The translations under genes and the position numbers were made by a program. From assembly GCA_001643675.2 (NCBI GenBank), contig LSRY02000025.1, positions 744,001 through 808,000 on the forward strand: a stretch of DNA of 64,000 bases. The letters run 5' to 3'. The notes below the pieces were generated by a model. It was given only the letters and a program-made list of their open reading frames with translations, had not been told where the DNA came from and did not search any database. Below, in pieces: positions 6,998-60,794 of the stretch; the stretch's first letter is position 1, and the number at the start of each line of letters is the position of its first letter. The stretch is from Monocercomonoides exilis PA203 (lineage: Eukaryota > Protista > Preaxostyla).

Positions 6998-9900
6998 TCA
7001 ACTTTGATGTTGATCATTTCTCAGTTCATTCAATTGGGAGTGTTTTTGGCTGTTGATAAATATTATTTCTGAGGAGGCCAAAGATCCAGATTGCTCCACT
7101 TCTGAATTTTCCTGAGATCCTTCTTTGTAGGTGACTGCATCAGACATTGTGAGGATCACAGCTCCTGCTGGGAATCTCTGGATGAATTCTCGTTTCAGAT
7201 CGCTCAGTATTGGCCTTGCTCCTGGCTTCTCACTCACTGCCAATTTGACCAGCTCATAAAAAGAAGAGTCGCGAACTGCAGCCATATCTGGTCTTTCTCC
7301 ATTCGCAATCTTCTGCCCTGCCACTTCTGCCTCACACTCCCCAAACGGGATCTGCAGCGTCAGGCACTCCCACAGCATCATCCCTATCGAGAACACCACC
7401 GACTCCTTCATTGCCCCCATCTTCTTGTTGATCAACAGCTCTGGCGCCTTCCACCTCAAGCACTCTTTTTTGAAGCTATCCTCCTCCTCAAACGCAGATG
7501 AGGGAAGAGAGTCCCTTTCATCATCATCATCACTTGCATATGTCACAACTGTTGATGAAGAGATTGATGATGAGTCAGAGTCATCATCTGACAATAAGTC
7601 TGAGTGCATCACAATGCAGATCACCATGTGTTCGGAAAACAGCACAATGTGAGGACTCAAATTGGCAAGTGAAGAGAGTGGATTTTCCATTTCATCAAAT
7701 GAATGCAGTGCCCCATTCGCCACCCAAAACAGGATTTGAGCAGCTGTCTGCTCTCTTTGTTGAAGGCTCCCAATTTCCATCTCCTTCTTCTCATTCCTTC
7801 CATGCAACAGCATGAACAATGAATCCCTCAAGTCCACAATCAGCTTTTCATGAGGAGATGAACAGGCCATTGCATCCACCAGATTCGACATTGACGAAGT
7901 GGTTGGGCACAGATCATCACCACGAACAAATGTTGTATCTGAATCTGTGGTTGAAGTTGTTGAAGTGGATGAGATAGATGGCGAAGGAGTTCGCTTTCTT
8001 GTCTCTTCTTCTTCAACCTTTTCCAATACCCATTCAGGAATCTTGTCTGAGTCTCTTCCCAAAATGTATTCAGTGGAGCCACTCTCAGAGAGAAGATGCT
8101 CTGATGACTCTGAATGCTGCATATTCGTATCATACGCCCTCTTCTTTATTCTTTCTTCATTCTTCTTCTCTGCCTCCATCTCTGCTCTTCTCCACTGCTC
8201 CTCAGGTGACATTTCCATTGTCACCATCTCAAATGCCTTCGGATCTTTTCTGATGTTATTATTCACAATCTCTCTTAGATCTTCTGCCTCATTCTTCATG
8301 TTTCTCCATCTTATTACAAACAAAATAAATCCAATGAAGGCAATCAAAAACATCACAACAAGCACAATCACAACCAACAACCAATAAGATTTCCCTTCTT
8401 TTCCTCCTTCAACAAGTTTTTCATCTCCATTCTTTGCTTCACTTGCATTCTTCAGAATGAAAGGCTCAGTGGCTGAGGGAGCATCAGCATTGCCAAAGAG
8501 CAGACACACAGACACCTCTGCCTCTGCTGGCGCCTCTCGAAGGATGCTCCCTTGTATTTCCCCAAAGGCCTCCTTTTCCGAGACAAGCCCTTTTGCATCG
8601 AACTCGTACCGATGCAGCAATTCCTCGGTTCCGATGGTTGTTGCCAGCCGGAACGACAGGTTGCAGGGCAAGAGGAGCTCTCCCTGGAATCTGATTGTGA
8701 CCTCGCTCGTTGCTTCTGCTTCGTTTCCCGCCTCGTGGGCAGAATGGAGTGTTGGGATGAAGAAGGGAGACAGCCTGTGGCGGGGGATGCCGGCAAGCGT
8801 GCATCCGCTGTCCAGTATCCACAGAGAGGTGTTGTCTTTCGCGCCGTCTCCCCCTTTCACGCTCGCCAGGGTCAGCGACGCCCCATCGGAGCAGGCGATG
8901 TTCCGGCGGGCAGACGGATAGCTGCTGGCCGAAGGGCTGCTGCGGGCAGAGGGGCTGTTGCCCACAAACTTTGCATCGTCCATGCGGACAGTGCCTCCAG
9001 AGACAGACAGCGCTCCATCCGATGCGTTTGCCACTGTGAGATCGCTGATGGCTGCTGTTGTGTTGCACAGATGGACCAGCGACGCATTCCACGAGCAGAT
9101 GCTGTCTGCGCTGTTTCTGTTTCTGTTTCCATTTGCACTTGCAGCTGTTCCTGTGGGTGCTCCCTCAAACACACACATGGCCAGCGAGAGATCTGCTGCA
9201 TTGCTCACACTCACAACGCTCCCCTGCTGTGCCGGTTCATCAGCATCGTTGCCAGAGGATGGGCCACATTGCGAGCAGGTGAAGTTGGACAGGGATATGT
9301 GTGCAGAGGGGGAAGACGCAGAAAGCACAGACGAGCCGAAGGAGGTGCTGGTGCTGGTGCTGGTGCTGGAGCGTGTGCTTGTGCAGTTGCGGAAAGACGA
9401 GCCAGAAAAGGCAATGTCTCCTGTGGAGGTGGCAGTGGCGGGGAGGCAGAGGATGCTGCCCTGCGAAAACACCAGATGCTCGGCTGCCACGCTGTGTGCC
9501 GAGGCGCTCTGGCACTGGCGGAACTCGAAGGCGCTGGCTGACAGCTGGAGGTGCTGGAGGCTTATGTTTGCGAGGGCGACACGGTCGGCAGCGGAGAGGA
9601 GGAAAGGCGGGAGAGCGAACGCGAGGTGCAGGACGGAGCAGTTGTCGACAGTCAGGTGGCCACCCTCGATGGCGAGCAGGGAGGAGTTGAGGAGCACTGG
9701 GTGTGCAGCTGGCGAGGTGGTTGGCGAGGTGGCTGATGAAGCGGCAGAGGAAGCAAACTGGACAAAGGAGAGCAAGAGGTGGCCATCGGTGTGGCACACA
9801 ACAGCACTGCCTGTGTGCGAAAAGGATTGGCTGAAGAGGAAGTCGAGACACTCGATCCGGACGTTTGCAGAGGTTGCGAGGATGGCTGGGCAGTGCTGGA

Positions 9901-12900
9901 TGGGGGTGTCGAGGTGGACAAGCGCAGAGGACGGGGACTCGAGCGAGCGGATGCTCACGCTGGCTGCGCTGCATGGTGCGCAGATGGCTGTCTGGAGCGA
10001 CACCAGCAGCTGGGAGTATTGAGACGGAACGATGTGCTGCACCCCCTCATTCAGCGACTCGCAAGGCTTGCCGAACTCTCCACATTGCTTGCTGTCTTCG
10101 TGGTTGTCTGCAGCAGAAGACACAAAGATCGTCTCGCTCTGGTATTTCACCACCCTCAGCAGCAGATCCACTTCCCCCACAAACGAGTCTGTTGTGCAGC
10201 CCCATATTGCTAGATCCTTCACAAACGGTGCTCGGAAGTCCAGCAAGAATTGTTCATCTGCAATTTGAGTCTCGATTGAGTGGCATCGAACATACACGTC
10301 TCTTCCTCTAAACGCTGAGTTATCCTTGAATGTGATATTTGACAGCATAAACTTCAGAGGCTGCTCAGCTGTCGAGGTGCATTCCAGAAACAGCCACCCG
10401 CCTCTTCCTGTGGTTGAGCAGAAGCACTCAGAAATCGTGCAAAACAAGCAGTCAAGGTGTCCTCCTTCGTTCAACAGGGCAAATATCGCCCCTCCCTTTC
10501 CACACCTCGTTCCGCCACACTTCTTCATCGTTGTGTTTCGAATCACCATTTTCAAAGGCTCAACATCATTGTCATTTCGAATGACAGGAATATCAGCAGT
10601 TGTGTTCTGGGTGACTTCTTCGAATACACTCCACTCAATGACAACATCTTGTTCAACTGCATTTCTCTCTCTTCTTGAATTCTTTGAAATGCTCAATCCT
10701 CTTGCCCCATCCAAATCAACATTCTTCATCGTCAGATTTTTGATGTTCAGAATCGTTGAAGATAACACAGAAATCACATCCTTTGAAAAAGACAGCGATT
10801 GCATTGTCACCAATTCCAATTGAACTGTGCCTCCATCTGCCTTGATCAATCCATAGCTGATTATTTCTTCTCTGCTTTCTTCCATTTTTGTGAATGAACA
10901 GTCCTTCACAGTCAACAACGCATCACTTGATCCAACATCCATCAAATAATTGACTCCACTTGCAAATGATGATGGAATCACAAAGCAAATCAGCTCGAAA
11001 TTTGTAATTCCCTGAATCTTCATTGCTGCTTTCTCTGATCCTTCAAGCGAAGCGAGACATTCCAAGGAGCAAATGAGGCTATTATCTGATTTTATTGCAG
11101 CCCCGCTGAGATCCACACATTTCTGAAGAATCGCCTTCTCAACGATACTGATGTTCCTTTCGTTTCCTTCGGACAATCGATCCAGAGAATAATCGATTGA
11201 CAGGCAAGGACAATCCGAAAACCCACAGGCACCCATATCTTTTCCTTCGCCTCCAACAAATATCTCTGATCCAAGTGCAATCCAGAAATACACCAGCGGA
11301 ATGGCATTTGTTGTGTCATTCCCATCAAACCCTCTCATCGAATCCAAGGAAATATCATTCAGATTCTCAGACACAAATGGAAGCGATGCATTTGTGATGC
11401 TCTTTGTCAAGTTGGATGATTCGACAAACAGGTCATTTCCATATCTCGCAACATTCGGCTTTTCTGTGCCAAAAACAGGAGATGAGATCGCAAACAAAGA
11501 ATAATCATCAATCAACTTCAGTGCCATTCCTCCTCCAAAGCCAGGTTTCTCCTCTCCAGTTGGTGCAGTGCATCCTATGAATGTGCATGAAATAATATTC
11601 AATTGAGTATTCCCTTTCAACTGAGAAAACATTGCCCCTCCTCTGCTTCCATCAGCAAGCACAGAGCATCCATCAAAAACACATTCTTCAATATTTATTT
11701 CTCCATTTGAATTTTCATCATTGCTGTTGTCAATGCTCACACAACCTCCACTTCCAGCTGTTCTTTCTATTTCTGTGAAAGTGCAGTTCGTCATGCTCAA
11801 CCACTGATTGCTCATCAACTCGGCCTTTGTGATGCTTCCAGTCAATGAGATCAATGGATTTCCGCTCAAAGTGATTGACGAAGCTGAGAACGAATCAATT
11901 GTCAGGATTCCCGAGGCAATGGATAAGAATAAGGATACCAGTTCTGATGAAGAATCTTGAAGAGTTAAAGAACATTGAAACAGCGTTAGTGATGAAGAAG
12001 ATGATGAAATAAAAGTGGAATGTGATGAAAAAGAAGAAGGAAGAGAGAAGATAAGTTTCGATAATTCTGTTTCAACGCTTGTTGTTAACATCGCTGAATT
12101 GGATGTTGCACTCGAATCAGAGACTGTCCAGCCACTTTCATCATCATTTCCTCGGATTTCATGATTCTGATTAGCAAAAGCCAATTCATCAGCCATCATA
12201 ATCATTCCACTCACAGCAACTTTCTTTGTTTCTGTTTGACGTGTGAGAGAGTGCTTTATTGTCAAACAGGGGAATTTGACTATTCCGCAATGAGAATGAT
12301 CAGATGCCTCAGTATTACTCACACATATTTCTTCCGGTGTGGGAAGGAGATAGATGCACAAAGGGATGGCCACAGTCGTATTTCCATTGTCATATCCTCT
12401 CACCTTGTCAAACGAGTCCAATGAATCTGTCACACACGTAATCTTTTGTGACTTTGCAGTTTCTTCCAGGTCTGGTGAAATGACAAAGATATCATTCCCC
12501 CATTTGGCTGTGTTCGTTCCAAATGAAGAGGAGATCAGGATGTTTGGACTTCCAGTCGATAATCGAAGAAGAATTCCACCCCCAAGACCATTGGATGCCG
12601 AACAAAAGCAGCCATTAAAAGATCCACCACTCACTTTCACTTCATTTTCTACTCCTGCACATAACATCATTGATCCTCCATTCTCTGAGCCTGTGCTCCC
12701 ACAACCAGAAAATGAACATGAATTCAGCTTAATGTTAATCTTATCATTGGAAAACGAAATCACTGCTGCTTCACTATTTGTTCTCTCAATCCCATCAAAG
12801 GCACACTCCGAAAGCGTCAATGATATTTCATTTGTCGAAGAAAGCGAAAACAATGAAGTTGTGGAGATCGTCTTTGCCCAGTTCACATTGTCCATCTGCA

Positions 12901-14845
12901 GCACACCATTCTGAACATTGATCAGCTCTGTTGTGAATGCTGTTTCTGTTGATTGTCCACTTCCCGTTGAAATGTTCAGTCTGCTCACATACATCTCTCC
13001 TGCTCCAGAAATCTCAAACAGCCTTGACCCACGGTTATTCGGATGAATAAAGTCATGCACAAGAACAAAGTCTCTCACAGTCAATGTGCCTGTCGAGACA
13101 GCAAAAAGAGACAACCCAGCTGCTTCAAATTCTGTCTGCACTGTTGTGCTCAAACCACTCTGGCCATATATTGTGAAAGAGTTTGTGCCACAATCCACAC
13201 TTTTGGTTTCTGTAATCGTTCCTGTGAGTATCTGGACATCCTTCACAACATCCGGGATCAGCTGGGTGAGGCAATGGCTGATGGTGCCACATGGATGAGT
13301 CTCATTAATTCCGCATGCATATGTGTCTTTTGCATTTGGTTTGGTTAACACTGAGGAGACATATCTGATTCTTCCCCCATTGTTCGGAAGCCACTCGCTT
13401 TTGTCACCGTCTGCATAATATCTATTTCCATCTGTTCTTGTTGAATAACACCAAGCAATTTGAGAATTTGTGGGGTTGTCACTAACTAAAATATCATTTC
13501 CTCTAGGAGCACTGTTGTTATGAAAAAAACAAAACCATAAAAGGTTTCCATTATATCTACTTGCATTGATAATCACACCTCCACCATCACGAGCTGAATA
13601 ACATCCTTGTAAAAGGCAATTATGAGAAACAATTTTGTCAATTGGATGCCAATTAAAATAACCTCCCCCTCCTGAACTGTCTATGTTATTACAACAACAA
13701 TTATAGAAAAAGCAATTTAAAATGCAATCTTTTGTTTTCAATGATTTTGAAGTCAAAACGCCAAGTCCTCCACCATCATTTCCTGACCATCCATCTTTAA
13801 ACAAACAATTATCAACAAGGACTTGGACAGACATTTCTTCTATTTCCGCGCCAGCCCCTCCAAGATCTTTGGATGAAACACAGTAACACTCAACAAATGT
13901 GGAATGCTTAACAGTGCATTCCGCAATTTTCAAAGCATATATCCCCCCTCCTCTTGTTGAAGTTGCGTTGCATTTCATAAAGGATGAATTCTCAACTGTC
14001 AGTGTTGCACTCGAATTGCCATAAACATAAAGTGCTCCTCCGCATGAAGCATCGCATTCGATCCATTCAGCGTTTTTGAAGTTCTGTGTCTGGGTGGTTG
14101 TCAGTCTATCAGTGTTTTTCATTCTCGAATCAACCCTTTTATTGTGGAGGAATGTGCAATTGTTGCACAAAAATGAACCAGATCCTTCTGTTCCACTCGC
14201 AATCCCTCCCTCAAGCACATTCATCGATCTTTTAACATCACAATCCTCCATTGAACTCCTCTTCATCAATGTCATTTTTCCAGTTTGCATTGTCTCTGTT
14301 TCACAATATTTATTTGTGATATTCGCAAATTTGCAGTTTTGGATTCCTTCAAAACTTCCTGAACCATCTCTCAAAAAACTGCCTCCATTCTCGCAAAACA
14401 CAACATCCTCAAACTCACTGTTTCTTACAAACAACAAAGACAAATCACCTCCTTCCATCTTCACCACACTCCCCATCATTCCACATTCCTGACCATTATC
14501 AATACCTAAAGTCGTGTTTATCAGCCAGCATGTCCCTCCATTCCTCACATAATTCCCATTCCACTCATTGTTTCTCGCAAACACACTTCCCTCAACCTGC
14601 AGCAATGATCTTGCTCTTATTTCAATCATCACACAATCTTCTGGCTTTTCAAGCAACATCCCCTTCAATTCAACTGATGAGTTGTATATTTCGCAGAACG
14701 TACGAACAACACTTCCCCTCTCCAAAATACCACTCTTCTCCATCCCACGAGCATTGAAAGCATCATATTCATTTCTCAATCTATCATTTCTGTCTTTGCC
14801 ACAAATTGTTGACAACAGGCACACAAGAAAAAGGAAGGGAATCAT
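6998..14845 (-). CDS. Giant type-I membrane receptor-like protein, paralog A (2615 aa): signal peptide, Pmp-like beta-helix modules, TM, TKL-derived pseudokinase
   Basis: Intron-less ORF. Signal MIPFLFLVCLLSTICG; GGA(I/L/M) and FxxN/FxxC repeats; four D-x3-CG-x4-5-PC-x-(T/S)-(I/L) module heads; TM YWLLVVIVLVVMFLIAFIGFILFVI followed by RWR; kinase C-lobe motifs LRWKAPE, SVVFSIGMMLWECLTLQIPF, GERP, ARP. Confidence 0.9.
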   Translation of the reverse strand: MIPFLFLVCLLSTICGKDRNDRLRNEYDAFNARGMEKSGILERGSVVRTFCEIYNSSVELKGMLLEKPEDCVMIEIRARSLLQVEGSVFARNNEWNGNYVRNGGTCWLINTTLGIDNGQECGMMGSVVKMEGGDLSLLFVRNSEFEDVVFCENGGSFLRDGSGSFEGIQNCKFANITNKYCETETMQTGKMTLMKRSSMEDCDVKRSMNVLEGGIASGTEGSGSFLCNNCTFLHNKRVDSRMKNTDRLTTTQTQNFKNAEWIECDASCGGALYVYGNSSATLTVENSSFMKCNATSTRGGGIYALKIAECTVKHSTFVECYCVSSKDLGGAGAEIEEMSVQVLVDNCLFKDGWSGNDGGGLGVLTSKSLKTKDCILNCFFYNCCCNNIDSSGGGGYFNWHPIDKIVSHNCLLQGCYSARDGGGVIINASRYNGNLLWFCFFHNNSAPRGNDILVSDNPTNSQIAWCYSTRTDGNRYYADGDKSEWLPNNGGRIRYVSSVLTKPNAKDTYACGINETHPCGTISHCLTQLIPDVVKDVQILTGTITETKSVDCGTNSFTIYGQSGLSTTVQTEFEAAGLSLFAVSTGTLTVRDFVLVHDFIHPNNRGSRLFEISGAGEMYVSRLNISTGSGQSTETAFTTELINVQNGVLQMDNVNWAKTISTTSLFSLSSTNEISLTLSECAFDGIERTNSEAAVISFSNDKINIKLNSCSFSGCGSTGSENGGSMMLCAGVENEVKVSGGSFNGCFCSASNGLGGGILLRLSTGSPNILISSSFGTNTAKWGNDIFVISPDLEETAKSQKITCVTDSLDSFDKVRGYDNGNTTVAIPLCIYLLPTPEEICVSNTEASDHSHCGIVKFPCLTIKHSLTRQTETKKVAVSGMIMMADELAFANQNHEIRGNDDESGWTVSDSSATSNSAMLTTSVETELSKLIFSLPSSFSSHSTFISSSSSSLTLFQCSLTLQDSSSELVSLFLSIASGILTIDSFSASSITLSGNPLISLTGSITKAELMSNQWLSMTNCTFTEIERTAGSGGCVSIDNSNDENSNGEINIEECVFDGCSVLADGSRGGAMFSQLKGNTQLNIISCTFIGCTAPTGEEKPGFGGGMALKLIDDYSLFAISSPVFGTEKPNVARYGNDLFVESSNLTKSITNASLPFVSENLNDISLDSMRGFDGNDTTNAIPLVYFWIALGSEIFVGGEGKDMGACGFSDCPCLSIDYSLDRLSEGNERNISIVEKAILQKCVDLSGAAIKSDNSLICSLECLASLEGSEKAAMKIQGITNFELICFVIPSSFASGVNYLMDVGSSDALLTVKDCSFTKMEESREEIISYGLIKADGGTVQLELVTMQSLSFSKDVISVLSSTILNIKNLTMKNVDLDGARGLSISKNSRRERNAVEQDVVIEWSVFEEVTQNTTADIPVIRNDNDVEPLKMVIRNTTMKKCGGTRCGKGGAIFALLNEGGHLDCLFCTISECFCSTTGRGGWLFLECTSTAEQPLKFMLSNITFKDNSAFRGRDVYVRCHSIETQIADEQFLLDFRAPFVKDLAIWGCTTDSFVGEVDLLLRVVKYQSETIFVSSAADNHEDSKQCGEFGKPCESLNEGVQHIVPSQYSQLLVSLQTAICAPCSAASVSIRSLESPSSALVHLDTPIQHCPAILATSANVRIECLDFLFSQSFSHTGSAVVCHTDGHLLLSFVQFASSAASSATSPTTSPAAHPVLLNSSLLAIEGGHLTVDNCSVLHLAFALPPFLLSAADRVALANISLQHLQLSASAFEFRQCQSASAHSVAAEHLVFSQGSILCLPATATSTGDIAFSGSSFRNCTSTRSSTSTSTSTSFGSSVLSASSPSAHISLSNFTCSQCGPSSGNDADEPAQQGSVVSVSNAADLSLAMCVFEGAPTGTAASANGNRNRNSADSICSWNASLVHLCNTTAAISDLTVANASDGALSVSGGTVRMDDAKFVGNSPSARSSPSASSYPSARRNIACSDGASLTLASVKGGDGAKDNTSLWILDSGCTLAGIPRHRLSPFFIPTLHSAHEAGNEAEATSEVTIRFQGELLLPCNLSFRLATTIGTEELLHRYEFDAKGLVSEKEAFGEIQGSILREAPAEAEVSVCLLFGNADAPSATEPFILKNASEAKNGDEKLVEGGKEGKSYWLLVVIVLVVMFLIAFIGFILFVIRWRNMKNEAEDLREIVNNNIRKDPKAFEMVTMEMSPEEQWRRAEMEAEKKNEERIKKRAYDTNMQHSESSEHLLSESGSTEYILGRDSDKIPEWVLEKVEEEETRKRTPSPSISSTSTTSTTDSDTTFVRGDDLCPTTSSMSNLVDAMACSSPHEKLIVDLRDSLFMLLHGRNEKKEMEIGSLQQREQTAAQILFWVANGALHSFDEMENPLSSLANLSPHIVLFSEHMVICIVMHSDLLSDDDSDSSSISSSTVVTYASDDDDERDSLPSSAFEEEDSFKKECLRWKAPELLINKKMGAMKESVVFSIGMMLWECLTLQIPFGECEAEVAGQKIANGERPDMAAVRDSSFYELVKLAVSEKPGARPILSDLKREFIQRFPAGAVILTMSDAVTYKEGSQENSEVEQSGSLASSEIIFINSQKHSQLNELRNDQHQS

Positions 14846-14879
14846 TGTTTCAATGACGATTATGGGTTCATGATCCCAT

Positions 14880-26714: not shown

Positions 26715-26722
26715 AAAGAAAG

Positions 26723-26783
<61 letters not shown>

Positions 26784-41818: not shown

Positions 41819-41861
41819 TTTTTTTCGAAACATGTATGATCAAGACCATATTTTTATTTAA

Positions 41862-48284: not shown

Positions 48285-48289
<5 letters not shown>

Positions 48290-48315
<26 letters not shown>
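48290..48315 (+). repeat. A26 homopolymer
   Basis: Direct reading of the sequence. Confidence 0.9.
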
Positions 48316-50233: not shown

Positions 50234-51450
50234 ATGCAACAGATGACGTTGAAATTCTTGTATTTGTTGGAGAAAGATGCATATCGAAACATTTGCATGT
50301 ATATGGATAATGTTGGAAATTATTCGAAAAAAGGAGAACGCAATTCATTGGGAACAATTTGCGAAGCACAGCAATTGAATCAACAAGATGCGTTTTTCAT
50401 TGATGGATTGGGCCTTTTATCACACGATTTTGAAATGGAATTTCAAGACGATCAGAAAAGTCATGAAAGAAACACTTGTGTGAAAAAAACCCTTGGATCG
50501 AACGTATGCTTTTATTTTTCTTCTCTCCTTTTTTTCTTTTTAGCATTCAATAAACAAAAAGAAGTATCCATTGAATTTTACGAATGCTTTGAAACAAACT
50601 TTTTCATTCGTTTTATCCATTTTCTTTTCATTTTTTCTTTTGAAGCAAGTTTTATTTCTGATTTTTGAAAGAAATAATCCACTTAATCAAATATGATGAT
50701 TTTTAAAAAGAAAGCATCGGGGAAGAGGGAACGAATCGTGTGGGCCATGTGCACACTCAACTCGAATGAGTGGCTGGAAGAGATTGCTTTTGTCCAGCAA
50801 GGAGAACAGATGGAATGGGCGTTGTGCTGCTTTGGGGAAGCAAGGGAGTTGCAACAGGCACAGCAAGGCACCACAAAAGACAGCATATTCAGATGGCTTT
50901 GGCTTCGCTAAAATTGGCGCAATCCAGCGCAATGCAGGAGATAGGATCGAAGTCAGAGGCATCGGAGGAACATCAGCAAGGGAATATTTCAAAGGAATTT
51001 CTTTGGTTGCAGGAAAAATAAAAACAGAAGGAAAATAAAATAATAAAAAAAAACCAATAATTATTGTATCTTCAGAGTGATGTGGCTGCAATCTTTTATT
51101 GTTGAAGCAGTGAAACGAAAAATGGAAAAGCAAAACAAAGGAAAGAAATAATATTTTTTATGATGCCTCCAACCTCATGCATATTGAATACCCTTTTGTG
51201 TTTGGCTTTTGTGCCATTCTTTGGCCAAGAAGGCCGAGGGTGATGTTATGCGAATTGGCAAGGCCTGGCTCAGACAATCGATTATTGGTTGCCGGAGGGC
51301 TTTGAGGAAAGCCCTTGGCTGTCGCAAGCCTGAGCAAGGATGCAGAAGCACATGGCAGTGCAACTCTGTCGTTGAGAATCGCCTGTTCTGCGAAAATGAG
51401 GCCAAGAGGAGCAAAATATGTGCTTTGCTCAAACAAATAAGCAAACTTTA
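50234..51450 (+). pseudogene. Relic of a spliced gene: GC-richer exon-like patches broken by stops
   Basis: Three coding-like patches (~50234-50500, 50710-51030, 51160-51450) separated by AT-rich intron-like spacers; no clean continuous frame; family unrecognised. Confidence 0.3.
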
Positions 51451-51555
51451 GGGGGAAAAACAAACACAAAACAAACATCACTGGCGATGATCACCAGCGC
51501 AATTGAAATTCTCTTCTTTCAAATACACTTTTTTTTCCCCATTTCTTTTTCATTC

Positions 51556-54500
51556 TCAAATTTTGGTGTTGACCGTTGGCTGGGCTTCGTTGGCAGTGCT
51601 GCTGGCTGAGAAGGCCAAGGATGTTGTGCCTTGCCTGTGTCCGTCGGTCGAGTCTTCGAGGTCGACTGCGTCTGTGAGGGTGAGGACAGCTGCGCCAGGC
51701 GGGAAGCGCCCGATGAACTCTCTTTTGAGCTGGACAAGGGAGGGGCGTGCACCAGGCGACTGGGACACACAGCTCTTCACAAGGCCAAAGAAGGAAGAGC
51801 ACTGCACTGCCTCGAGTGCTGGCCGCTCTCCGTTCGCAATCTTCTGCCCTGCCACCTCTGCCTCATACTCCCCAAACGGGATCTGCAGAGTCAAGCACTC
51901 CCACAGCATCATCCCAATCGAGAACGAGACTGACTCCTTTGCTGCTCCCATCTTCTTGTTGATCAGCAGTTCTGGTGCCTTCCACCTCAAGCACTCTTTC
52001 CTGAAGTCATCTTCATCCTCAAATGCTGATGAGGGAAGAGAATCTTCATCGTCATCATCACTGGCAGAAGTCACAGCTGTTGATGAAGAGATAGATGAAG
52101 AATCTGAATCATTAGACAATAAGTCAGAGTGAATCACAATGCAGATGACCATGTGTTCTGAAAATAGAACAATGTGCGGACTCAGATTGGATAATGACTG
52201 AAGAGGATTTTCCATTTCTTCAAACGAGTGAAGTGCCCCATTCGCCACCCAGAACAGGATTTGGGCAGCTGTTTGCTCTCTTTGTTGAAGGCTCCCAATT
52301 GCCATCTCCTTCTTCTCGTTTCTTCCATGCAACAGCATGAACAGAGAATCCCTCAAATCCACAATCAGCTTCTCATGCGGAGAAGAGCAGCTCATCGCAT
52401 CCACCAGATTCGACATTGACGAAGTGGTTGGGCACAAATCTTCCCCTCGAACAAATGTGGATTCAGTGTCTGAAGTGTCTGTGGTTGAAGTGGATGAAAT
52501 GGATGGAGAAGGAGATCTCTTTCTTGTCTCTTCCTCTTCATCCTTCTCCAATGCCCATTCAGGAATCTTGTCTGAGTCTCTTCCCAGAATGTATTCAGTG
52601 GAACCACTCTCAGATAGAAGATGCTCTGATGACTCTGAATGCTGCATATTCGTATCATATGCTCTTTTCTTGATTCTCTCTTCATTCTTCTTCTCTGCCT
52701 CTCTCTCGGCTCTTCTCCACTGCTCCTCAGGTGACATTTCCATTGTCACCATCTCAAATGCCTTCGGATCTTTTCTGATGTTATCATTCACAATCACTTC
52801 AAGTTCTTCTGTTCTTCTCTTTTGCTTTCTCCATCTGACTGCCAAAACAACAATTATCGCCAACAACATTATGAAAACTGAACAAGCGATCACAATTAAC
52901 AACCAATAAGATTTCCCTTCTTTTCCTCCTTCAACAATTCTTTCGTCTCCATTTGCTTTTCCATCGCTCTTGTTCTTCAGGATGAAAGGCTCAGTGGCTG
53001 AGGGAGCATCAGCATTGCCAAAGAGCAGACACACAGACACCTCTGCCTCTGCTGGCGCCTCTCGAAGGATGCTCCCTTGTATTTCCCCAAAGGCCTCCTT
53101 TTCCGAGACAAGCCCTTTTGCATCGAACTCGTACCGATGCAGCAATTCCTCGGTTCCGATGGTTGTTGCCAGCAGGAACGACAGATTGCAGGGCAAGAGG
53201 AGCTCTCCCTGGAATCTGATTGTGACCTCGCTCTGTTCATCTGCTTCGTTTCCCGCCTCGTGTGCAGAATGGAGTGTTGGGATGAAGAAGGGAGACAGCC
53301 TGTGGCGGGGGATGCCGGCAAGCGTGCATCCGCTGTCCAGTATCCACAGAGAGGTGTTGTCTTTCGCGCCGTCTCCCCCTTTCACGCTCGCCAGGGTCAG
53401 CGACGCCCCATCGGAGCAGGCGATGTTCCGGCGGGCAGACGGATAGCTGCTGGCCGAAGGGCTGCTGCGGGCAGAGGGGCTGTTGCCCACAAACTTTGCA
53501 TCGTCCATGCGGACAGTGCCTCCCGAGACAGACAGCGCTCCGTCAGATGCGTTTGCCACTGTGAGATCGCTGATGGCTGCTGTTGTGTTGCACAGATGGA
53601 CCAGCGATGCATTCCACGAGCAGATGCTGTCTGCGCTGTTTCTGTTTCTGTTTCCGTTTCTGTTTCCATTTTCATTTTCATTTGCACTTTCAGTGGTTTC
53701 TGAAGGTGCTCCCTCAAACACACACATGGCCAGCGAGAGATCTGCTGCATTGCTCACACTCACAACGCTCCCCTGCTGTGCCGGTTCATCAGCATCGTTG
53801 CCAGGGGATGGGCCACATTGCGAGCAGGTGAAGTTGGACAGGGACATGTGTGCAGAGGGGGAAGACGCAGAAAGCACAGACGAGCCAAAGGAGGTGCTTG
53901 TGCTTGTGCTGGTGCTGGAGCTGGAGCGTGTGTTTGTGCAGTTGCGGAAAGACGAGCCGGAAAAGGCGATGTCTCCCGTGGCAGTGGCAGGGAGGCAGAG
54001 GATGCTGCCCTGCGAAAACACCAGATGTTCGGCTGCCACGCTGTGTGCCGAGGCGCTCTGGCACTGGCGGAACTCGAAGGCGCTGGCTGACAGCTGGAGG
54101 TGCTGGAGGCTTATGTTTGCGAGGGCGACACGGTTGGCAGTGGAGAGGAGGAAAGGCGGGAGAGCAAACGCGAGGTGCAGGACGGAGCAGTTGTCGACAG
54201 TCAGGTGGCCACCCTCGATGGCGAGCAGGGAGGAGTTGAGGAGCACCGGGTGTGCAGCTGGAGAGGTGGCTGATGAAGTGGCAGAGGAAGCAAACTGGAC
54301 AAAGGAGAGCGAGAGGTGGCCATCGGTGTGGCACACAACAGCACTGCCTGTGTGCGAAAATAATGGGCTGAAGAGGAAGTCGAGGCACTCGATCCGGACG
54401 TTTGCAGAGGTTGCGAGGATGGCTGGGCAGTGCTGGATGGGGGTGTCGAGGTGGACGAGCGCAGAGGAAGGGGACTCGAGCGAGCGGATGCTCACGCTGG

Positions 54501-57500
54501 TTGCGCTGCATGGCGAGCAGATGGCTGTCTGGTGCGACACCAGCAGCTGGGAGTATTGAGACGGAACGATGTGCTGCACCCCTCATTCAGCGACTCGCAA
54601 GGCTTGCCGAACTCTCCACATTGCTTGCTGTCTTCGTGGTTGTCTGCAGCAGAAGACACAAAGATCGTCTCGCTCTGGTATTTCACAACCCTCAGCAGCA
54701 GATCCTCTTCCCCCACAAACGAGTCTGTTGTGCAGCCCCACATTGCTAGATCCTTCACAAACGGAGCTCGGAAGTCCAGCAAGAATTGCTCATCTGCAAT
54801 TTGATTTTCGATTGAGCGGCATCTCGCATACACATCTCTCCCTCTGAACGCAGCGTTGTCTCGGAATGTGATGTTGGATAATACAAACTTCAGAGGCTGC
54901 TCAGCTGTTGAAGTGCATTCCAGAAACAGCCACCCACCTCTTCCTGTGGTTGAGCAGAAGCACTCAGAAATCGTGCAAAACAAGCAGTCAAGGTGTCCTC
55001 CTTCGTTCAACAGGGCAAACATCGCCCCTCCCTTTCCACACCTCGTTCCACCACACTTCTTCATCGTTGTGTTTCGTATAACCATTTTCAAAGGCTCATC
55101 ATCATTGTCATTTCGAATGACAGGATTGTCATCCGTCGTGTTCTGGGTGACTTCTTCGAATACACTCCACTCAACAACAATGTTTTGTTCATCTTCATTT
55201 TTTCCTCTTTTTGATCCCTTCGAAATGCTCAATCCACTTGATCCATCCAGATCAACATTCTTCATCGTCAGATTTTTGATGTTCAGCATCGTTGAAGATA
55301 ACACAGAAATCACATCCTTTGAAAAAGACAGCGATTGCATTGTCACCAATTCCAATTGAACTGTGCCTCCATCTGCCTTGATCAGCCCATAGCTGATTAT
55401 TTCTTCTTCACTTTCTTCCATTTTTGTGAATGAACAGTCCTTCACAGTCAACAACGCATCACATGATCCAACATGCATCAAACTTTTAACATCACCAGTG
55501 AATGAAGATGGCATCACAAAGTTTATCAGTTCGAAGTTTGTAATTCCCTGAATCTTCATTGCTGCTTTCTCTGATCCTTCAAGCGAAGCGAGACACTCCA
55601 AGGAGCAAATGAGGCTATTATCTGATTTTATTGCAGCCCCGCTGACATCAACACATTTCTGAAGAACTCCTTTTCCAATGATGTTTATATCCCTTTCATT
55701 TCCTTCGGACAATCGATCCAGAGAATAATCGATTGACAGGCAAGGACAATCCGAAAACCCACAGGCACCCATATCTTTTCCTTCGCCTCCAACAAATATC
55801 TCTGATCCAAGTGCAATCCAGAAATACACCAGCGGAATGGCATTTGTTGTGTCATTCCCATCAAACCCTCTCATCGAATCCAAGGAAATATCATTCAGAT
55901 TCTTACATACAAACGGAAGGGATGCATTTGTGATGCTCTTTGTCAGGCTTGGCGATTCGACAAACAGGTCATTTCCATATCTTGCAACATTCGGCTTATC
56001 AGAATCAAAAACAGGAGATGAGATCACAAACAAAGAATAATCATCAATCAACTTCAGTGCCATCCCTCCTCCAAAGCCAGATTTCTCCTCTTCAGTTGGT
56101 GCTGTGCATCCTATGAATGTGCATGAAATAACATTCATTTGAATGTTTCCTTTCAACTGAGAAAACATTGCCCCTCCTCTGCTTTCATCAGCCAAAACAG
56201 AGCATCTATCAAAAACACATTCGGTAACATCAACTCTCTCACCTTCACCGTTATCATTGCTGATGTCAATGTAAATACAACCTCCATTTCCAGTTACTCT
56301 TTCTATTGTCTTCATTTCACATTTGGTGATGTTCAAGCTCTTTATGCTTCTGCATTCCATCAAGCATCCGCTTTGCTCCCCACTTCCTGAAAAGCGGCTT
56401 TCTGCAATTTCAACTGAAGGGACTCCTCCATTTCTTCCATTGGCAATGATTGCACTTGTCTGCCATCTGATTCCATTCCCAAACGTATTGCTTATTGCAA
56501 TCTTGCCTCTTTCCGCTTTCACAAAGGAAACATCCAAGCTATTTTTTGATGCAATAATCCCACAATCCTGAATTGTCAGTGAGCTGGAAATGCAATGGAA
56601 AATGCTTTCGTGAGATCCTATTCTTTCAGCAACAGAAAACACCAACTCAGCAAAGGTGGTTGGGCAGTGTATCTCAAATACTCCTTTTTGAGCACCAGAA
56701 ATGTCAGCTGCTATCTCATAACTTGAGATATTTCCTTCTCCAGTCACGTTCCATTCATCTATATCCATGATCAGCTCTTCCACAAATGAAAATGGCGAAT
56801 GCAGTTTTATCGACTTGTTTTTTCCAGAAAACCTCAAATCTGCTGCCTGAGTAATTGTGCAACACGGAACCTGCTCAAATCCACACCCACTGAAATCATG
56901 TGCCTTCTGCCCTCCAACGTGGCAAGGAGATGTGAAGTTGTTCCAAAAATACACAACAAGTGGTATCACGAATTCTTCATTTGCCGTTGAGCGCTCAAAC
57001 CCGTTCAACTTGTGAAGTTCATTCACATCAACATTGAAGCCGATTGTTGCCGTGTTTGTTACAGCCCTCAGATCATTTGCATCCAAAAACAAGTCTTTCC
57101 CTTTCCTTCCTGAACATCCATCAAATCTCACGCTCTTCAATACAAAATCAGATGCTCCAGCATCCAAATACAAGCAGGCCCCTCCTCCAAATCCTTTGCC
57201 TCCATCAACATTTGCTGATGCCTCACAATGAGAGAAGCACACTTTTTCCTCCTGTTCATTTTCATTTTCATTTTCATTTTCATTGTTTGAAGGCGCTTCC
57301 GTCACATTGCCAATCCTGAGGGATGATCCGCTTTTTGCCCGCACCCACAATCCCCCTCCATTCCCTCCCTCACTTTTGCATGAACTCATTGTTCCCTCTT
57401 CAAACACAAAGGAACAGCCACTTTCAAGTGTGCATTCAATCGCTCCCCCGTTCTGATTATTCACAGCAAAGTTCGAAATGTCAGAGCGTATAATGACAAT

Positions 57501-60500
57501 TTTGTTTGCATCTGTTGTGGAGATAAGACGCGAGGATGCCAGCTCTTCCGATCGAGCAATTGAAGAAACAACGCTGTCACACACCTGAAGAGAAGCGTTG
57601 TTCTTCACTTCAAATAGTCCTGATGTGAAAGATGTTCCGATCGCATTCAGTTGAACGCTTTTTAATTCTGCCTTTGTGATGCTTCCTGATAATGAGATCA
57701 ATGGATTTCCGCTCAAAGTGATTGACGAAGCTGAGAACGAATCAATTGTCAGGATTCCCGAGGCAATGGATAAGAATAAGGATACCAGTTCTGATGAAGA
57801 ATCTTGAAGAGTTAAAGAGCAATGTGATAGGGTTAGTGTTGAAGAAGATGACGAAATAAAAGTGGAATGCGATGAAAAAGAAGAAGGAAGAGAGAAGATA
57901 AGTTTTGACAAGACTGTTTCAACGCTTGTTGTTAACATCGCTGAATTGGATGTCGCACTCGAATCAGAGACTGTCCAGCCACTTTCATCATCATTTCCTC
58001 GGATTTCATGCTTTTGATTGGCAAAAGCCAATTCATCAGCCATCATAATCATTCCACTCGCAGTAACTTTCTTTGTTTCTGTTTGACGTGTGAGAGAGTG
58101 CTTTATTGTCAAACAGGGGAATTGGACTATTCCACAATGAGAATGATCAGATGCCTCAGTATTACTCACATATATTTCTTCCGGGGTGGGAAGGAGATAT
58201 ATGCACAGAGGGATGGCCACAGTGTTGTTTCCATTGTCATATCCTCTCACCTTGTCAAACGAGTCCAAAGAGGCTGCTACGCATTGAATCTTTTGTGACC
58301 TTGCAGTTTCTTCCAGGTCTGGTGAAAGGACAAAGATGTCTCTTCCCCATTTGGCTGTGTTCGTTCCAAATGAAGAGGAGATTTTGAAATTTGGATTTGC
58401 ATTCAATAGCTGGAGAAGGATTCCTCCTCCGAGTCCATTTGTCACCGAGCAATAGCAGCCATTAAAAGACCCGTCTTTCACATTCACTTCATTTGCATCC
58501 CCAACACACAACATCATTGATCCTCCATTCTCTGAGCCCGTGCTCCCACAACCAGAAAATGAACAAGAATCCAGATTCATGTTTGCCTTATCATTGGAAA
58601 ATGTCAATACAGCTGCTTCACTATTTGTTCTCTCAATCCCATCAAAGGCACACTCCGAAAGCGTCAATGATATTTCATTTGTCGAAGAAAGCGAAAACAA
58701 TGAAGTTGTGGAGATCGTCTTTGCCCAGTTCACATTGTCCATCTGCAGCACACCATTCTGAACATTGATCAGCTCTGTTGTGAATGCTGTTTCTGTTGAT
58801 TGTCCACTTCCAATAGATACGTTCAGACTGCTGATACTCATTACTCCTGCTCCATTTATCTCAAACAGCCATGACCCACGGTTATTCGGATGAGCCGAAC
58901 TGTGTAAAAGGGCAAAGTCACTGACAGACAATGTGCCTGTCGAGACAGCAAAAAGAGACAACCCAGCTGCTTCCAATTCTGTCTGCACTGTTGTGCTCAA
59001 ACCACTCTGGCCATATATCGTGAAAGAGTTTGTGCCACAATCCACACTTTTGGTTTCTGTAATCGTTCCTGTGAGTATCTGGACATCCTTCACAACATCC
59101 GGGATCAGCTGAGTGAGGCAATGGCTGATGGTGCCACACGGATGAGACTCATTAATTCCGCATGCATATGTGTCTTTTGCATTTGGCTGTGTTTCAGTTG
59201 ATGAGACAAATCTCACACTTCCAAAATCGTTTCTCAGCCATTTGCTTTTATCATTTATTGAATTGAAATCGGAACTCACTCTATTTTCTATTTGTCTTGT
59301 TGAGAAACAGCTGAAATCAATGTTGTTTGATGTTGAACCATGCAAAACAATATCGTGTCCTCCCCTTTTGCACGTGTTATTGTGAAAAAAGCAGTAATAA
59401 AACAAGACGCCATTATTATTTGCGTTAACGTGCTGTGTGACAGCACCTCCTCCACACATTGAATGGCAATGACAAAAGAGACAATTGGAAATAACCACTT
59501 TGTCCGTTGGATTCCAATGTTCAATAGCTCCACCATTTCCATCTATTGTATCATTGGCACTACAAAACAAAAACTTTGAATTAATAATGCAGGGTTTTTG
59601 TTTTTCTGTTTTTGTTGGTCGGAAATCAATTGCCCCTCCATCTTCTCCAGATGAACAGTCTTCAAACGAGCAATCATCAACCAAAGACTGTATAAGGACG
59701 TTCCCCATCATAACACCACCTCCACCCAAATCATTTGTCCCTTCGCAAGAACAGTTAATAAATGTGGAATGTTTAACTGAGCATTCTGCAATGTTCAAAG
59801 CACATATTCCACCACCATTTGTTGAAGAAGCATTGCATTTTGTGAAAGAACAATTTTCAACATCCAAAATTGCATTTTCATTGTTATACACATAAATGGC
59901 ACCTCCTTGTGGTGCTGTGCAATCTTCCCATTCGCACAACGAAAATGATTGGCTCTCTGTTAAATTCATTTGCCCTTTTTTCTCAAGAGCATTCATTTCT
60001 CTTTTCCCGTTGCTTATTGTTGTGTTTCTGCAGACAAATTCCTGTGAAGAATGCGAACCACTTGAGATCCCTCCTTCAAAGACATTTACACATGAATAAA
60101 TGAGTGCATTTTCCATTAAACTCAACAGGCATGAATGCTCCATTTGAAAATCACTGCTCTTGTCAGATTTCACAGACATGTTGCAGAAGGTGCAGTCATT
60201 GATCATTTGGCTCTTGGATTTTCCACATGAAAGAAACGGAAAACAATTCGAAACAAAAAGATTGGACAAGCAAGAGTTGTTTAGTGTTATTGAATTAGAT
60301 GCATCAGATGATTGGATGAGGCTTCGAGGATAGATGTTCGGTTGTGGAAGAAGTGTGAGATTTGAAAATTCAAGTGTTCCACTTTGCAGGAGGAACAAGA
60401 AGGAAGGAGATTGAGGTAACAAACAATTGAAGGAATGAAAAGATGATTGACTTTCAATGAATGCAAATGAGGAAGATGAGAGTTTAATGAGAGTGGAAGA

Positions 60501-60794
60501 TATAGTTATTGAAGAATTGATGATGCAGAAGAAAGTGGACATTGAGGAAACAGCCAAAGGGTTTGAAAATGTGGAAGAAGGCAAAACATGTTCAAATGTC
60601 TTTTTGATGATGTTGGTGGACAACTTGTTAGAATCATCAGCCATTTTGATTAAACCTGAACCGGGAAAAGTGTGCAGTGAATGAGCAATTGGGGAGGATT
60701 TTTGCTCATGGAAGGGGGATGGCAGAGCAGTGTTCAAGGTTGTAGTCAGCACAAAGAAGAGCAAGCACACATATAAAGACAGCTGAGACTGCAT
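51556..60794 (-). CDS. Giant receptor-like pseudokinase, paralog B (~3,080 aa if repaired), split by a 1-bp deletion at 54579-54582
   Basis: ORFs 54492-60962 and 51556-54579 join into a homolog of paralog A. Likely start MQSQLSLYVCLLFFVLTTTLNTA at 60794; five CG...PC module heads; TM; LRWKAPE kinase C-lobe. Confidence 0.85.

Follow-up and report, generated by a model that had tools for sequence, protein, structure and literature searches.

Introduction

Exchange of DNA between paralogs is a common evolutionary route to patchwork genes in large surface-protein families. The VSG, vlsE and msp2 systems combine silent donor cassettes with one expression site and somatic switching, and mutually exclusive expression and mitotic recombination have been established and measured, respectively, for the var genes. 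In the transmembrane kinases of Entamoeba histolytica (EhTMKs), the ectodomains consist of Cys-rich (CXXC) repeats and not of beta-helices. Monocercomonoides exilis is a gut flagellate without a mitochondrion. Its largest gene family, as published, comprises 332 'tyrosine kinases', 320 of them assigned to the TKL group, and overlaps the 'unclassified repeats' of the ONT assembly. The family is already known and the mechanism considered here is of a known kind, but patchwork through DNA exchange is so far undescribed for this family.

The window, the whole 64,000-nucleotide stretch analysed, lies on M. exilis contig C20 and contains gene A (MONOS_3388) and gene B (MONOS_15733). Both fall in the several-hundred-copy expansion published under the name "TKL tyrosine kinase", in agreement with the original prediction that the family was probably already annotated as an expanded TKL group. 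More than 550 proteins of the family were found, every one from M. exilis, with A matching MONOS_3388 at 100%. Scoring covered at least 18 full-length paralogs, and open frames of 2500-3060 aa are present in most matches.

Architecture of gene A

A and B are both on the minus strand, separated by ~37 kb, and are predicted to encode type I membrane proteins of 2600-3100 aa with a signal peptide, a tip, three or four beta-helix modules of ~350-450 aa, a membrane-proximal region, a transmembrane (TM) helix and a pseudokinase tail. The features of A are as follows.

6998..14845, minus strand: gene A (MONOS_3388, P0001; 100% match), an intact 2615-aa ORF, type I membrane receptor-like
13406..14845, minus strand: signal peptide and variable N-terminal beta-helix tip (aa 1-480), 43-60% nucleotide identity to B
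10004..13405, minus strand: three tandem beta-helix modules of ~350 aa, the main mosaic zone, defined by boundary motifs and nearest-relative switching
8387..10003, minus strand: GC-rich, Ser/Ala-rich membrane-proximal region, nearly homogenised in the C20 group (A, B, its twin B' and paralogs L002-L004)
8312..8386, minus strand: single TM helix (aa 2154-2178), a hydrophobic run followed by RWR
7001..8311, minus strand: conserved cytoplasmic domain with truncated dead kinase, Pfam C-lobe match at 7187-7477

A GND(I/L)(F/L)V motif and a CG..PC.(T/S)(I/L) cap mark the borders of each module. The proposal that the ectodomain is built from beta-helix repeats is borne out by modelling, which predicts a right-handed parallel beta-helix. 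The AF2 model of the A tip has three-strand coils (pLDDT ~85) and its Foldseek matches are parallel beta-helix proteins. The GG[AGS][ILVMF] motif occurs 11 times in A, and when proteins are compared by language-model features, the closest clusters with a name are those of Chlam_PMP, DUF1565 or Beta_helix. Membership among Pmp-like adhesins, which had also been suggested, was not recovered, with no match to Pfam Chlam_PMP or Beta_helix at E values up to 10. By analogy with many other beta-helix proteins, the tip may bind ligands, probably glycans.

By sequence, the cytoplasmic domain appears to terminate in a TKL kinase that is both truncated and catalytically dead, an ILK-like pseudokinase. 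The Pfam PF07714 match in A covers profile positions 162-257 only, and the best solved relative of the C-lobe is the ILK pseudokinase C-lobe (E = 6e-6). The Gly-loop, VAIK, HRD-Asp and DFG motifs are absent from 28/28 tails examined, as expected for the pseudokinase originally proposed. The domain is under strong constraint (omega ~0.08, dS 0.5-0.9). Structure prediction gave no reliable fold for it (pLDDT 39.7). The tail may act as a signalling scaffold.

Patchwork similarity between A and B

A and B are 90.8% identical over 6.1 kb, with blastn giving ~90% identity across A nt 1440-7558, and the original prediction was that this similarity changes abruptly along the gene. The identity profile, exact tracts and mismatch clustering all bear this out. 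In 100-nt windows, identity swings between 1.00 and ~0.68-0.85. It is low where divergence had been claimed: 43-60% in the N-terminal ~1.4-1.7 kb (the first ~500 aa), 57-62% in the last ~300 nt, 0.68 in the TM/juxtamembrane segment at 8245-8345, and 0.68-0.80 and ~0.79 in internal patches at 11650-11820 and 12520-12660. The near-identical tracts expected at ~8460-9120 and ~12765-12965 contain exact runs of 192, 260 and 200 nt.

A 12765-12964 = B 58612-58811, minus strand: exact tract of 200 nt, an example of putative exchange
A 8457-8648 = B 52982-53173, minus strand: exact tract of 192 nt, inside near-identical 8457..8998
A 8739-8998 = B 53264-53523, minus strand: exact tract of 260 nt, inside near-identical 8457..8998
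A 11163-11367, 9997-10150 and 11844-11971, minus strand: other exact tracts in the A versus B comparison
11687..11822, minus strand: example of a divergent A/B patch, in which A and L002 agree at 51 informative sites in a row in a 3SEQ-like triplet

The longest exact tract (260 nt) compares with a permutation maximum of 135, and the variance-to-mean ratio of mismatches per 100 nt is 7.68, whereas permutations average 0.90 and never exceed 1.67. Within 11687..11822, A is 0.99 identical to L002 and 0.72 to B, and the divergent last ~300 nt of A are closest to L010/L017 rather than to B.

Silent sites follow the same pattern, with sliding identity and dS between A and B both non-uniform along the gene. 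In 300-nt steps, 4-fold degenerate sites diverge by anything from 0.00 to 0.56 (chi2 104.5, df 20, p = 2e-13), and dS rises from 0.07 in the stalk through 0.23 in the modules and 0.43 in the TM/juxtamembrane segment (dN 0.16) to 0.62 in the cytoplasmic domain. These values bear on whether a simple duplication, followed by regional differences in selection or mutation rate, could have left constrained tracts intact while other patches evolved fast. Conservation does vary across the family (0.5-0.7 in the tip, 0.8-0.9 in modules 2-3 and 0.8-0.9 in the tail), and the cytoplasmic domain is strongly purified. However, the heterogeneity lies in silent-site divergence itself, and dS runs opposite to constraint, being highest in the most constrained domain and lowest in the stalk. 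The 200-nt tract shared by A and B is hypervariable in the family, with 137/198 positions polymorphic across 18 paralogs. Together with the changing nearest relatives and the non-coding flanks described below, these observations make duplication with variable selection extremely unlikely.

Tests for recombination among paralogs

Tests for recombination took in up to 18 of the several hundred paralogs, and because of this sampling the donors are mostly unsampled and the tract ends approximate. The PHI test gave z = -27.8 for 10 paralogs and z = -14.2 for the C20 group. In a GENECONV-like test restricted to polymorphic sites, 38/153 pairs reached the minimum p, and five runs of 109-176 sites, including the 12765-12964 tract, exceeded the 99.9% global null of 100. 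Seven triplets gave 14 ascent/descent tests in a 3SEQ-like analysis, of which 10 had p = 0.0002, three had p = 0.0004-0.007 and one was not significant; permutation p-values have reached the lowest value possible, and sites are treated as exchangeable in the permutations.

A copying model describes A better as a 17-segment mosaic (0.934 identical) than as a copy of the best single donor (0.893), and its nearest relative changes ~17 times along the gene, alternating in the module zone among B, L002, L003, L004, L009, L010 and L011. Almost all paralog DNA alignments to A begin near nt 1440 and stop near nt 4842. The A tip is closest to C20:601770 (80% aa) and to a cluster on C27 (74-77%), and the paralogs that match the body of A are not the best relatives of its tip. 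Trees built per segment conflicted significantly in one direction only: in AU tests, the clades found for S2, S3 and S5 are rejected by segment S1 (p = 7e-5, 6e-7 and 0.002), whereas the reciprocal tests of other segments against S1 clades were not significant, the clades having been picked after the trees were seen. The 3' non-coding flanks of B and L002 are 95-99% identical while their cytoplasmic coding DNA is 65-89% identical (omega 0.08). Flanks more alike than the selected coding interior contradict duplication with variable selection. The reading of the patchwork as segmental gene exchange thus draws on agreement among dS heterogeneity, PHI, GENECONV-like and 3SEQ-like tests, nearest-relative switching and non-coding flanks.

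Exchange also homogenises, which qualifies the description of the family as recombination-diversified. Inside the C20 group, the membrane-proximal region is 93-100% identical, against ~50% to other paralogs, its GC3 is 0.67-0.70 against 0.34-0.42, and the stalk dS is only 0.06-0.09. With the stalk homogenised in this way, we infer net diversification rather than observe it.

Gene B and its inverted twin

Gene B differs from A in its tip and in an additional module, and most of it lies in an inverted duplication.

51556..60794, minus strand: gene B (MONOS_15733), ~3079 aa if read through, two overlapping ORFs
56310..57660, minus strand: extra 454-aa beta-helix module (1.35 kb), an alignment gap lacking in A and most close paralogs
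59254..60794, minus strand: N-terminal tip of L002 type, ~90% nucleotide identity to L002, including ~135 nt upstream
50670..59240, no strand assigned: left arm of the 8.6-kb inverted duplication, 99.6% identical to the right arm

The right arm carries B', the inverted near-identical twin of B, and lies outside the window at C20:811349-819921. Inside the coding sequence, B and B' differ by only three homopolymer indels and one substitution. Read depth on the insert common to both is ~2x that of B-only sequence. A foldback-type repeat with ~740-bp inverted arms lies between them.

The B tip ends where similarity to both A and B' starts, with the onset of A/B similarity and the B/B' repeat boundary no more than ~60 nt apart. 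B' carries an orphan tip (best match 42% aa) on a body identical to that of B. The tips of A, B and B' are of three different types, exchanged at one junction. The extra module is 25-31% identical in amino acids to adjoining modules and is common only to paralogs on C28 and C49, at 75-77% nucleotide identity. Tips, extra module and tails occur in different combinations, consistent with the proposed shuffling of parts.

Could the chimeras or copied tracts have been made by ONT assembly or short-read polishing? The assembly is ONT-based, the B and B' homopolymer indels are typical of unpolished ONT consensus, and short-read contigs, which are unable to phase both sides of a shared tract, do not bridge the shared tracts. 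The frame of B is itself broken at 54579, where a C homopolymer (C4/C5) carries a 1-nt indel in comparison with B' and A; the extra C is present in 4/4 runs, the older gene model P0123 continues across the site, and the indel is probably an assembly error. Nevertheless, an older gene set, EukProt EP00770, contains an identical A protein (2508 aa) and a 2847-aa B protein that matches at 100% over 1008 aa and 99.1% over 1855 aa, extra module included. Differences between the gene models suggest that this set derives from an independent 454 assembly, and its reproduction of A and B argues against assembly chimeras. DNA runs of 2016 and an independent RNA study of 2024 yield contigs that stop at the borders of shared tracts but agree fully with B, showing zero differences on the B patch flanks and across the lower junction of the extra module, which they bridge. 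The pattern is family-wide (38/153 pairs), and patches differ by 15-30%, well above what polishing could produce. The concern that the identical tracts are collapses or chimeras is contradicted by the older gene set and independent contigs, and we consider an artefact very unlikely.

Shuffling by transposons, with family genes or fragments carried as DNA transposon cargo, would find some support in the foldback-type repeat. However, no transposase ORF was found between or beside A, B and B', with no ORF longer than 118 aa in the B-B' spacer. The exchange tracts lie inside the genes, keep the frame and measure tens to hundreds of nucleotides, which points to homologous conversion rather than transposition. 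We give this explanation almost no credence.

A somatic system like those of var, VSG or vlsE, in which programmed or high-rate mitotic recombination keeps producing new receptors and expression is restricted or exclusive, would account for tip cassettes exchanged at one recurrent junction on identical bodies in B and B', for tracts whose 100% identity implies very recent exchange, and for a very large family clustered in the genome. Against it, there are no silent truncated cassettes and no recognisable expression site, and contigs of several paralogs occur together in one RNA library, evidence that applies at the population level only. The analogy to VSG, vlsE and msp2 drawn in the original prediction does not carry over, because the paralogs here are full-length genes, each with its own start, signal peptide, TM helix and tail. 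Somatic diversification is improbable, and would supplement the main explanation and not replace it.

Taken as a whole, the A/B patchwork very probably arose over evolutionary time as paralogs repeatedly underwent non-allelic homologous recombination with one another. Gene conversion in tracts of roughly 70-1700 nt would be the main process, joined by larger exchanges at domain boundaries, one of them swapping tips at A nt ~1440 / B nt ~1710. Gain or loss of a whole module and replacement of a tail are further events at this level. Exchange partners would lie both inside the chromosomal cluster and across contigs, and new combinations may have been selected for recognition diversity.

Comparison with known systems

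In the EhTMKs (e.g. the B1 family), too, receptor-like TKL kinases with a single membrane pass have undergone a large expansion specific to one lineage, again in an anaerobic gut protist; numerous members are nearly identical, and inactivity is predicted for many. Selective expression of EhTMKs has been reported (PMC2880585). The proteins of M. exilis exceed the EhTMKs 2-3 times in length, and none of the sampled tails retains any part of the catalytic apparatus of the N-lobe.

The var (PfEMP1) genes of Plasmodium falciparum, and similar protist families that use ectopic or mitotic recombination, share with the M. exilis family full-length paralogs on several chromosomes, a mosaic of domain cassettes and short shared blocks, and a distal end that is most variable. 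Mutually exclusive expression and measured mitotic recombination are features of var. M. exilis is regarded as a commensal, so that immune evasion is no obvious driver.

Chlamydial Pmps and the Pmp-like/BspA-like families of Trichomonas share the predicted right-handed parallel beta-helix with recurring GG[AGS][ILVMF]. In place of the autotransporter barrel of the chlamydial Pmps, the M. exilis proteins have a TM helix and pseudokinase tail. Integrin-linked kinase (ILK), a TKL-group pseudokinase scaffold, also lacks catalytic residues, but its kinase fold is complete and it is a cytosolic protein with ankyrin repeats, whereas in M. exilis the Gly-loop/beta3 region is apparently missing and the domain forms part of a giant receptor.

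Clusters of plant receptor-like kinases or proteins and NLRs, shaped by gene conversion and unequal crossing-over, belong to an unrelated lineage and use an LRR fold rather than a beta-helix. Plant receptor-like kinases are mostly active, unlike the dead kinase tails of M. exilis. Both systems nonetheless consist of clustered receptor paralogs in which variable ligand-binding repeats (putatively so in M. exilis) are joined to a conserved signalling part and change in repeat-unit number.

Gene A encodes a predicted beta-helix receptor of a known family

Gene A, a giant receptor-pseudokinase gene (window 6998-14845, minus strand) in an assembly of 82 Mb and 101 contigs where the window is C20:744001-808000, is an intact open reading frame of 2615 amino acids, identified by protein search as MONOS_3388. 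Its C-terminal half has more than 550 matching database proteins; all 120 of the matches listed are "uncharacterized proteins" of M. exilis, and most of these carry PF07714. The original prediction guessed correctly that the family was already annotated as an expanded TKL group: it has been published as the largest gene family in M. exilis, with 332 predicted "tyrosine kinases", of which 320 fall into the TKL group (PMC6759080), and in the Nanopore assembly its genes overlap "unclassified repeats" (PMC8767320). Neither of these papers mentions recombination in the TKL family, nor did a full-text literature search that included gene conversion find such a mention. We analysed 18 paralogs and four fetched stretches. 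The paralogs are full-length genes, each with its own start, signal peptide, transmembrane (TM) helix and tail, and most have intact frames of 2500-3060 aa. Genome-wide, a minority of family copies contain in-frame stops, and the family falls into two length classes, ~2550-2650 aa and ~2950-3060 aa, consistent with one ~450-aa module being present in some copies and absent from others.

From the N to the C terminus, A consists of a signal peptide, a variable tip, three modules, a Ser/Ala-rich region, a TM helix (aa 2154-2178) and a cytoplasmic part of ~460 aa. The three modules are bounded by GND(I/L)(F/L)V and CG..PC.(T/S)(I/L) motifs and recur with a period of ~350 aa. The ectodomain is predicted to adopt a right-handed parallel beta-helix fold of the pectate-lyase-like kind. 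An AlphaFold2 model of aa 1-840 has a mean pLDDT of 74 (~85 in the tip) and consists of stacked three-strand coils, with PL6 alginate lyases (E = 9e-7), Ag43, AlgE epimerases, PfbA and phage tailspikes as its best Foldseek matches in the PDB. In language-model features, the nearest named clusters carry DUF1565, Chlam_PMP or Beta_helix, and none of the corresponding Pfam profiles (Chlam_PMP, PF02415; Beta_helix; DUF1565) matches the tip or modules at E values up to 10. The proposed Pmp-like beta-helix ectodomain therefore stands as a modelled beta-helix and falls short of a significant match to the Pmp repeat HMM, making these proteins Pmp-like in style rather than demonstrated Pmp members. The annotated MONOS_3388 drops ~107 codons of the continuous reading frame as an intron (window ~13516-13836, A aa 337-443). 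This intron is probably spurious, because the excised part is confidently modelled as beta-helix coils (pLDDT 84-93).

The cytoplasmic domain is a conserved kinase remnant

The PF07714 match in the cytoplasmic tail of A (E = 4e-8, above the gathering score) covers only profile positions 162-257 of 258, corresponding to the C-lobe. The APE motif and the alphaF-alphaI helices are present, the blocks WKAPEL...FSIGMMLWE...PFGE are invariant or nearly so, and the C-lobe aligns with ILK, TNNI3K and TAK1, with the pseudokinase ILK as the best solved relative. Judged by its catalytic motifs, the domain would not be an active TKL kinase (PF07714/PF00069): the Gly-loop, VAIK lysine, HRD Asp and DFG are all absent in 28 aligned paralog tails, where the HRD-equivalent block reads (A/S)NLSPHIVLF and Ser-rich low-complexity sequence takes the position of the N-lobe. 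Sequence support for a kinase-like fold in the tail comes only from a beta4-beta5/hinge-like block and the C-lobe, and an AlphaFold2 model built from the 28 tails (pLDDT 39.7) was left out of the fold search. Across the 28 paralogs the domain has a mean column identity of 67% with long invariant blocks. Its omega is ~0.08, and dS is old (0.5-0.9) in every pair. The low omega together with the old dS indicates that the domain has been kept through selection and not through homogenisation, which argues that the dead kinase has a function, most plausibly that of a scaffold.

Similarity between A and B is patchy beyond chance

Gene B (MONOS_15733, window 51556-60794, minus strand), a paralog of A, lies in the same orientation ~37 kb away, and the genes between the two are unrelated to them (a kinesin, an MCM-binding protein and a Metallophos giant). 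Two other giant open reading frames lie in the window:

27496-35643, minus strand: giant intronless open reading frame of 2715 aa with a C-terminal calcineurin-like phosphoesterase domain
36797-41818, plus strand: giant intronless open reading frame of 1673 aa for which no Pfam match was found

The 2715-aa frame has a very strong strand composition skew, with GC skew and AT skew both about -0.4.

By blastn, A and B are ~90% identical over A nt 1440-7558, an alignment broken by 1.35 kb present only in B. Within it, 100-nt windows swing between 1.00 and 0.68-0.85 identity, and the ends are divergent, with only 43-62% identity over the initial 1.4-1.7 kb and the final 300 nt. The tracts originally described as nearly identical proved to be exact over 200 nt (A 12765-12964, equal to B 58612-58811), 192 nt (A 8457-8648) and 260 nt (A 8739-8998), and three further exact tracts were found. 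This clustering exceeds chance by three measures: the variance/mean ratio of mismatches per 100 nt is 7.68, whereas permutations average 0.90 and never exceed 1.67; no exact run in the permutations is longer than 135 nt, compared with 260 nt between A and B; and at 4-fold degenerate sites the divergence per 300 nt varies between 0.00 and 0.56 (chi2 104.5, df 20, p = 2e-13). The patchwork is confirmed, and extends to the whole sampled family.

Selection and recombination as sources of the patchwork

Regional identity between A and B could reflect conservation driven by constraint on the protein. Along the genes the A-B dS is non-uniform: the modules have 0.23, the membrane-proximal region 0.07, the surroundings of the TM helix 0.43 and the cytoplasmic domain 0.62. 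It therefore peaks where protein constraint is strongest (omega ~0.08), the reverse of what constraint-driven conservation predicts, and this trend contradicts the selective explanation.

Several further, independent observations point to recombination between paralogs. In the paralog alignment, the closest relative of A changes every 150-1700 nt among B and the paralogs L002, L003, L004, L009, L010, L011 and L017, and the identity of a single paralog to A often drops from 0.95-1.00 to 0.71-0.80 between adjacent windows. A copying model that composes A from 17 segments reaches 0.934 identity, compared with 0.893 for the best single relative. The PHI test gave z = -27.8 for 10 paralogs and z = -14.2 for five genes of the C20 cluster. 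A GENECONV-like test, which is insensitive to regional conservation because it uses polymorphic sites only, reached the permutation floor in 38 of 153 pairs, and five shared runs (109-176 polymorphic sites) exceeded the 99.9% global null of 100. Between A and B, the tract at 12766-12963 contains 137 polymorphic sites in 198 nt, and is thus hypervariable in the family even though A and B are identical there. In 3SEQ-like triplets, 13 of 14 ascent/descent tests gave p <= 0.007, ten of them at the floor of 0.0002; the remaining test was not significant. The same triplets show that the patch at 11650-11820, originally singled out as divergent, is a block in which A equals L002 at 51 consecutive informative sites and B differs. 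B and L002 are themselves whole-locus duplicates, with a non-coding 3' flank 95-99% identical for ~1 kb, yet their cytoplasmic coding regions are only 65-89% identical despite strong purifying selection, a combination that could be produced only by replacement of internal segments.

Segment trees also conflict. AU tests on segment S1 reject the clades of S2, S3 and S5 (p = 7e-5, 6e-7 and 0.002, respectively), while the reciprocal tests fall short of significance, probably because the segments are short and mosaic themselves. The clades were named after the trees had been inspected, so that, together with the non-significant reciprocal tests, the AU results provide partial support only. Overall, the paralogs display the statistically supported mosaicism of ectopic gene conversion, along with incongruent segment histories for which AU support is partial. 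From dS, the switching of closest relatives, the PHI, GENECONV-like and 3SEQ-like tests, and the B/L002 flanks, the gene-conversion reading of the patchwork is well supported.

Whole domains are exchanged between paralogs

Differences between paralogs also follow domain boundaries. The 480-aa tip of A is nearest to C20:601770 (80% aa identity) and a cluster on contig C27 (74-77%), and is not close to the genes that match the body of A. The C-terminal tail of A is nearest to L010 and L017 (0.83-0.89), compared with ~0.6 to B. The tip of B is of the L002 type, ~90% identical in nucleotides, including ~135 nt upstream. The extra 454 aa of B form one more repeat of the module, with 25-31% identity to the neighbouring ones, which matches the ~3000-aa length class of the family beside the ~2600-aa class.

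B has an inverted twin, B', just past the window end (C20:811336-819034), with 7.7 kb of coding sequence identical to B except for one substitution and three homopolymer indels. The two lie in a larger duplication:

window 50670-59240 and C20:811349-819921, inverted arms with B and B' head to head: inverted duplication of 8.6 kb, 99.6% identity

Its arms contain ~0.9 kb of 3' flank and end at the tip/body junction, so that B and B' differ only in the N-terminal ~515-570 aa and upstream DNA. The tip of B' is wholly unlike that of B, an orphan (best family match 42% aa identity) fused in frame. The B/B' boundary (~59187-59240) is within ~60 nt of the onset of A/B similarity (~59253, A 13405), and most paralog DNA alignments to A begin at nt ~1440 and end at ~4842. 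We make no claim of a conserved DNA anchor at this junction, where the step in the family-wide profile, from 0.6 to 0.72, is only modest.

The AT-rich spacer separating B from B' contains an inverted pair of 742-bp repeats (window 62612-63353 and C20:808758-809498), 99.9% identical and 1.4 kb apart, parts of which are found in inverted pairs at at least 40 places on many contigs. The pair resembles a foldback or MITE-like element and may have promoted the B/B' inverted duplication. A transposon origin of the patchwork at the A/B locus was rejected, as no transposase ORF is present there.

Assembly errors and the patchwork

Because the assembly is based on Nanopore data, the possibility that the patchwork is an assembly artefact has to be taken seriously. 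Against it, the older EukProt gene set contains exactly the same 2508-aa protein for A, and for B one model, MONOS_15733.1, of 2847 aa. Aligned to the window, this model is 100% identical over 1008 aa and 99.1% identical over 1855 aa; it contains the extra module and runs uninterrupted over position 54579. The newer annotation splits B ("MONOS_15733p2") and bridges B' (MONOS_17641) with gaps, and these differences between models suggest that the two gene sets were derived from different assemblies. On the patch flanks, contigs of DNA runs from 2016 and of an unrelated RNA-seq study from 2024 have zero differences to B; they also span the lower junction of its extra module. The borders of shared tracts at 58782-58790 and 54735 are where contigs from all runs stop, a pattern expected of tracts that occur in several genomic contexts; short-read contigs break at such tracts and cannot phase mosaics. 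A joint from 54507 to 55141 in reads on B, with a shorter side of only 20 nt, was ascribed to a paralog. Sequence common to B and B' has ~2x the read depth of B-only sequence (60-89 compared with 41 in run X1), supporting a real duplication.

The three indels between B and B' are each of 1 nt, lie in C4/C5 or T4/T5 runs at 52443, 54579 and 56685, and each break the frame of one copy. The T4 variant of B' at 56685 is absent from all sequencing runs examined, and an extra C at 54578 is present in all four runs, with a partial contribution from paralogs possible. Given this run evidence and the homopolymer location of the indels, B and B' are likely, although not proven, to be intact, with the breaks being unpolished Nanopore consensus errors inside an exact repeat.

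Discussion

The patchwork is best explained by recurrent non-allelic homologous recombination among full-length paralogs, in which short conversion tracts, plus occasional exchanges of whole domains or modules, pass within the C20 cluster and between it and genes on contigs C58, C7 and C27. Exchange works both ways, making new combinations and also homogenising. In the GC-rich membrane-proximal region, members of the C20 group are 93-100% identical to one another and ~50% identical to other paralogs. In A (window 8446-10105), as in B, L002, L003 and L004, this region has a GC3 of 0.67-0.70, compared with 0.34-0.42 elsewhere, and across these five genes it has the lowest dS (0.06-0.09). The high GC3 and low dS may result from GC-biased gene conversion.

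The family makes up several percent of the genome of M. exilis, the first eukaryote shown to lack mitochondria, and publications have so far treated it only as a number of "TKL tyrosine kinases" and under "unclassified repeats". New here are the predicted nature of its proteins as giant beta-helix receptors carrying a conserved dead kinase, the swapping of tips, modules and tails between members through recombination, and the likely origin of some annotated breaks in assembly errors. An anonymous expansion thereby becomes a testable receptor system, with questions about its ligands, signalling and expression logic, and one that calls for paralog-aware assembly, polishing and annotation.

The proteins may be located at the cell surface, bind ligands and perhaps recognise bacteria. 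It is improbable that they form an actively (mitotically) recombining combinatorial repertoire, with tip cassettes placed onto constant bodies at a fixed junction, as in B and B', and with clone-variable or restricted expression. If true, a bacterivorous, mitochondrion-less gut commensal would possess var-like or immune-receptor-like discrimination of prey or host ligands. The analogy to VSG, vlsE and msp2 in the original prediction, and with it programmed or somatic switching, is not supported, since the paralogs examined are all full-length genes with no silent, truncated donor cassettes among them, and contigs of several co-occur in one RNA library, at the population level. The family is already known and its evolutionary mechanism is conventional for large surface-protein families; closer analogues than VSG, vlsE or msp2 are var-type families and the Entamoeba transmembrane kinases (PMC2880585).
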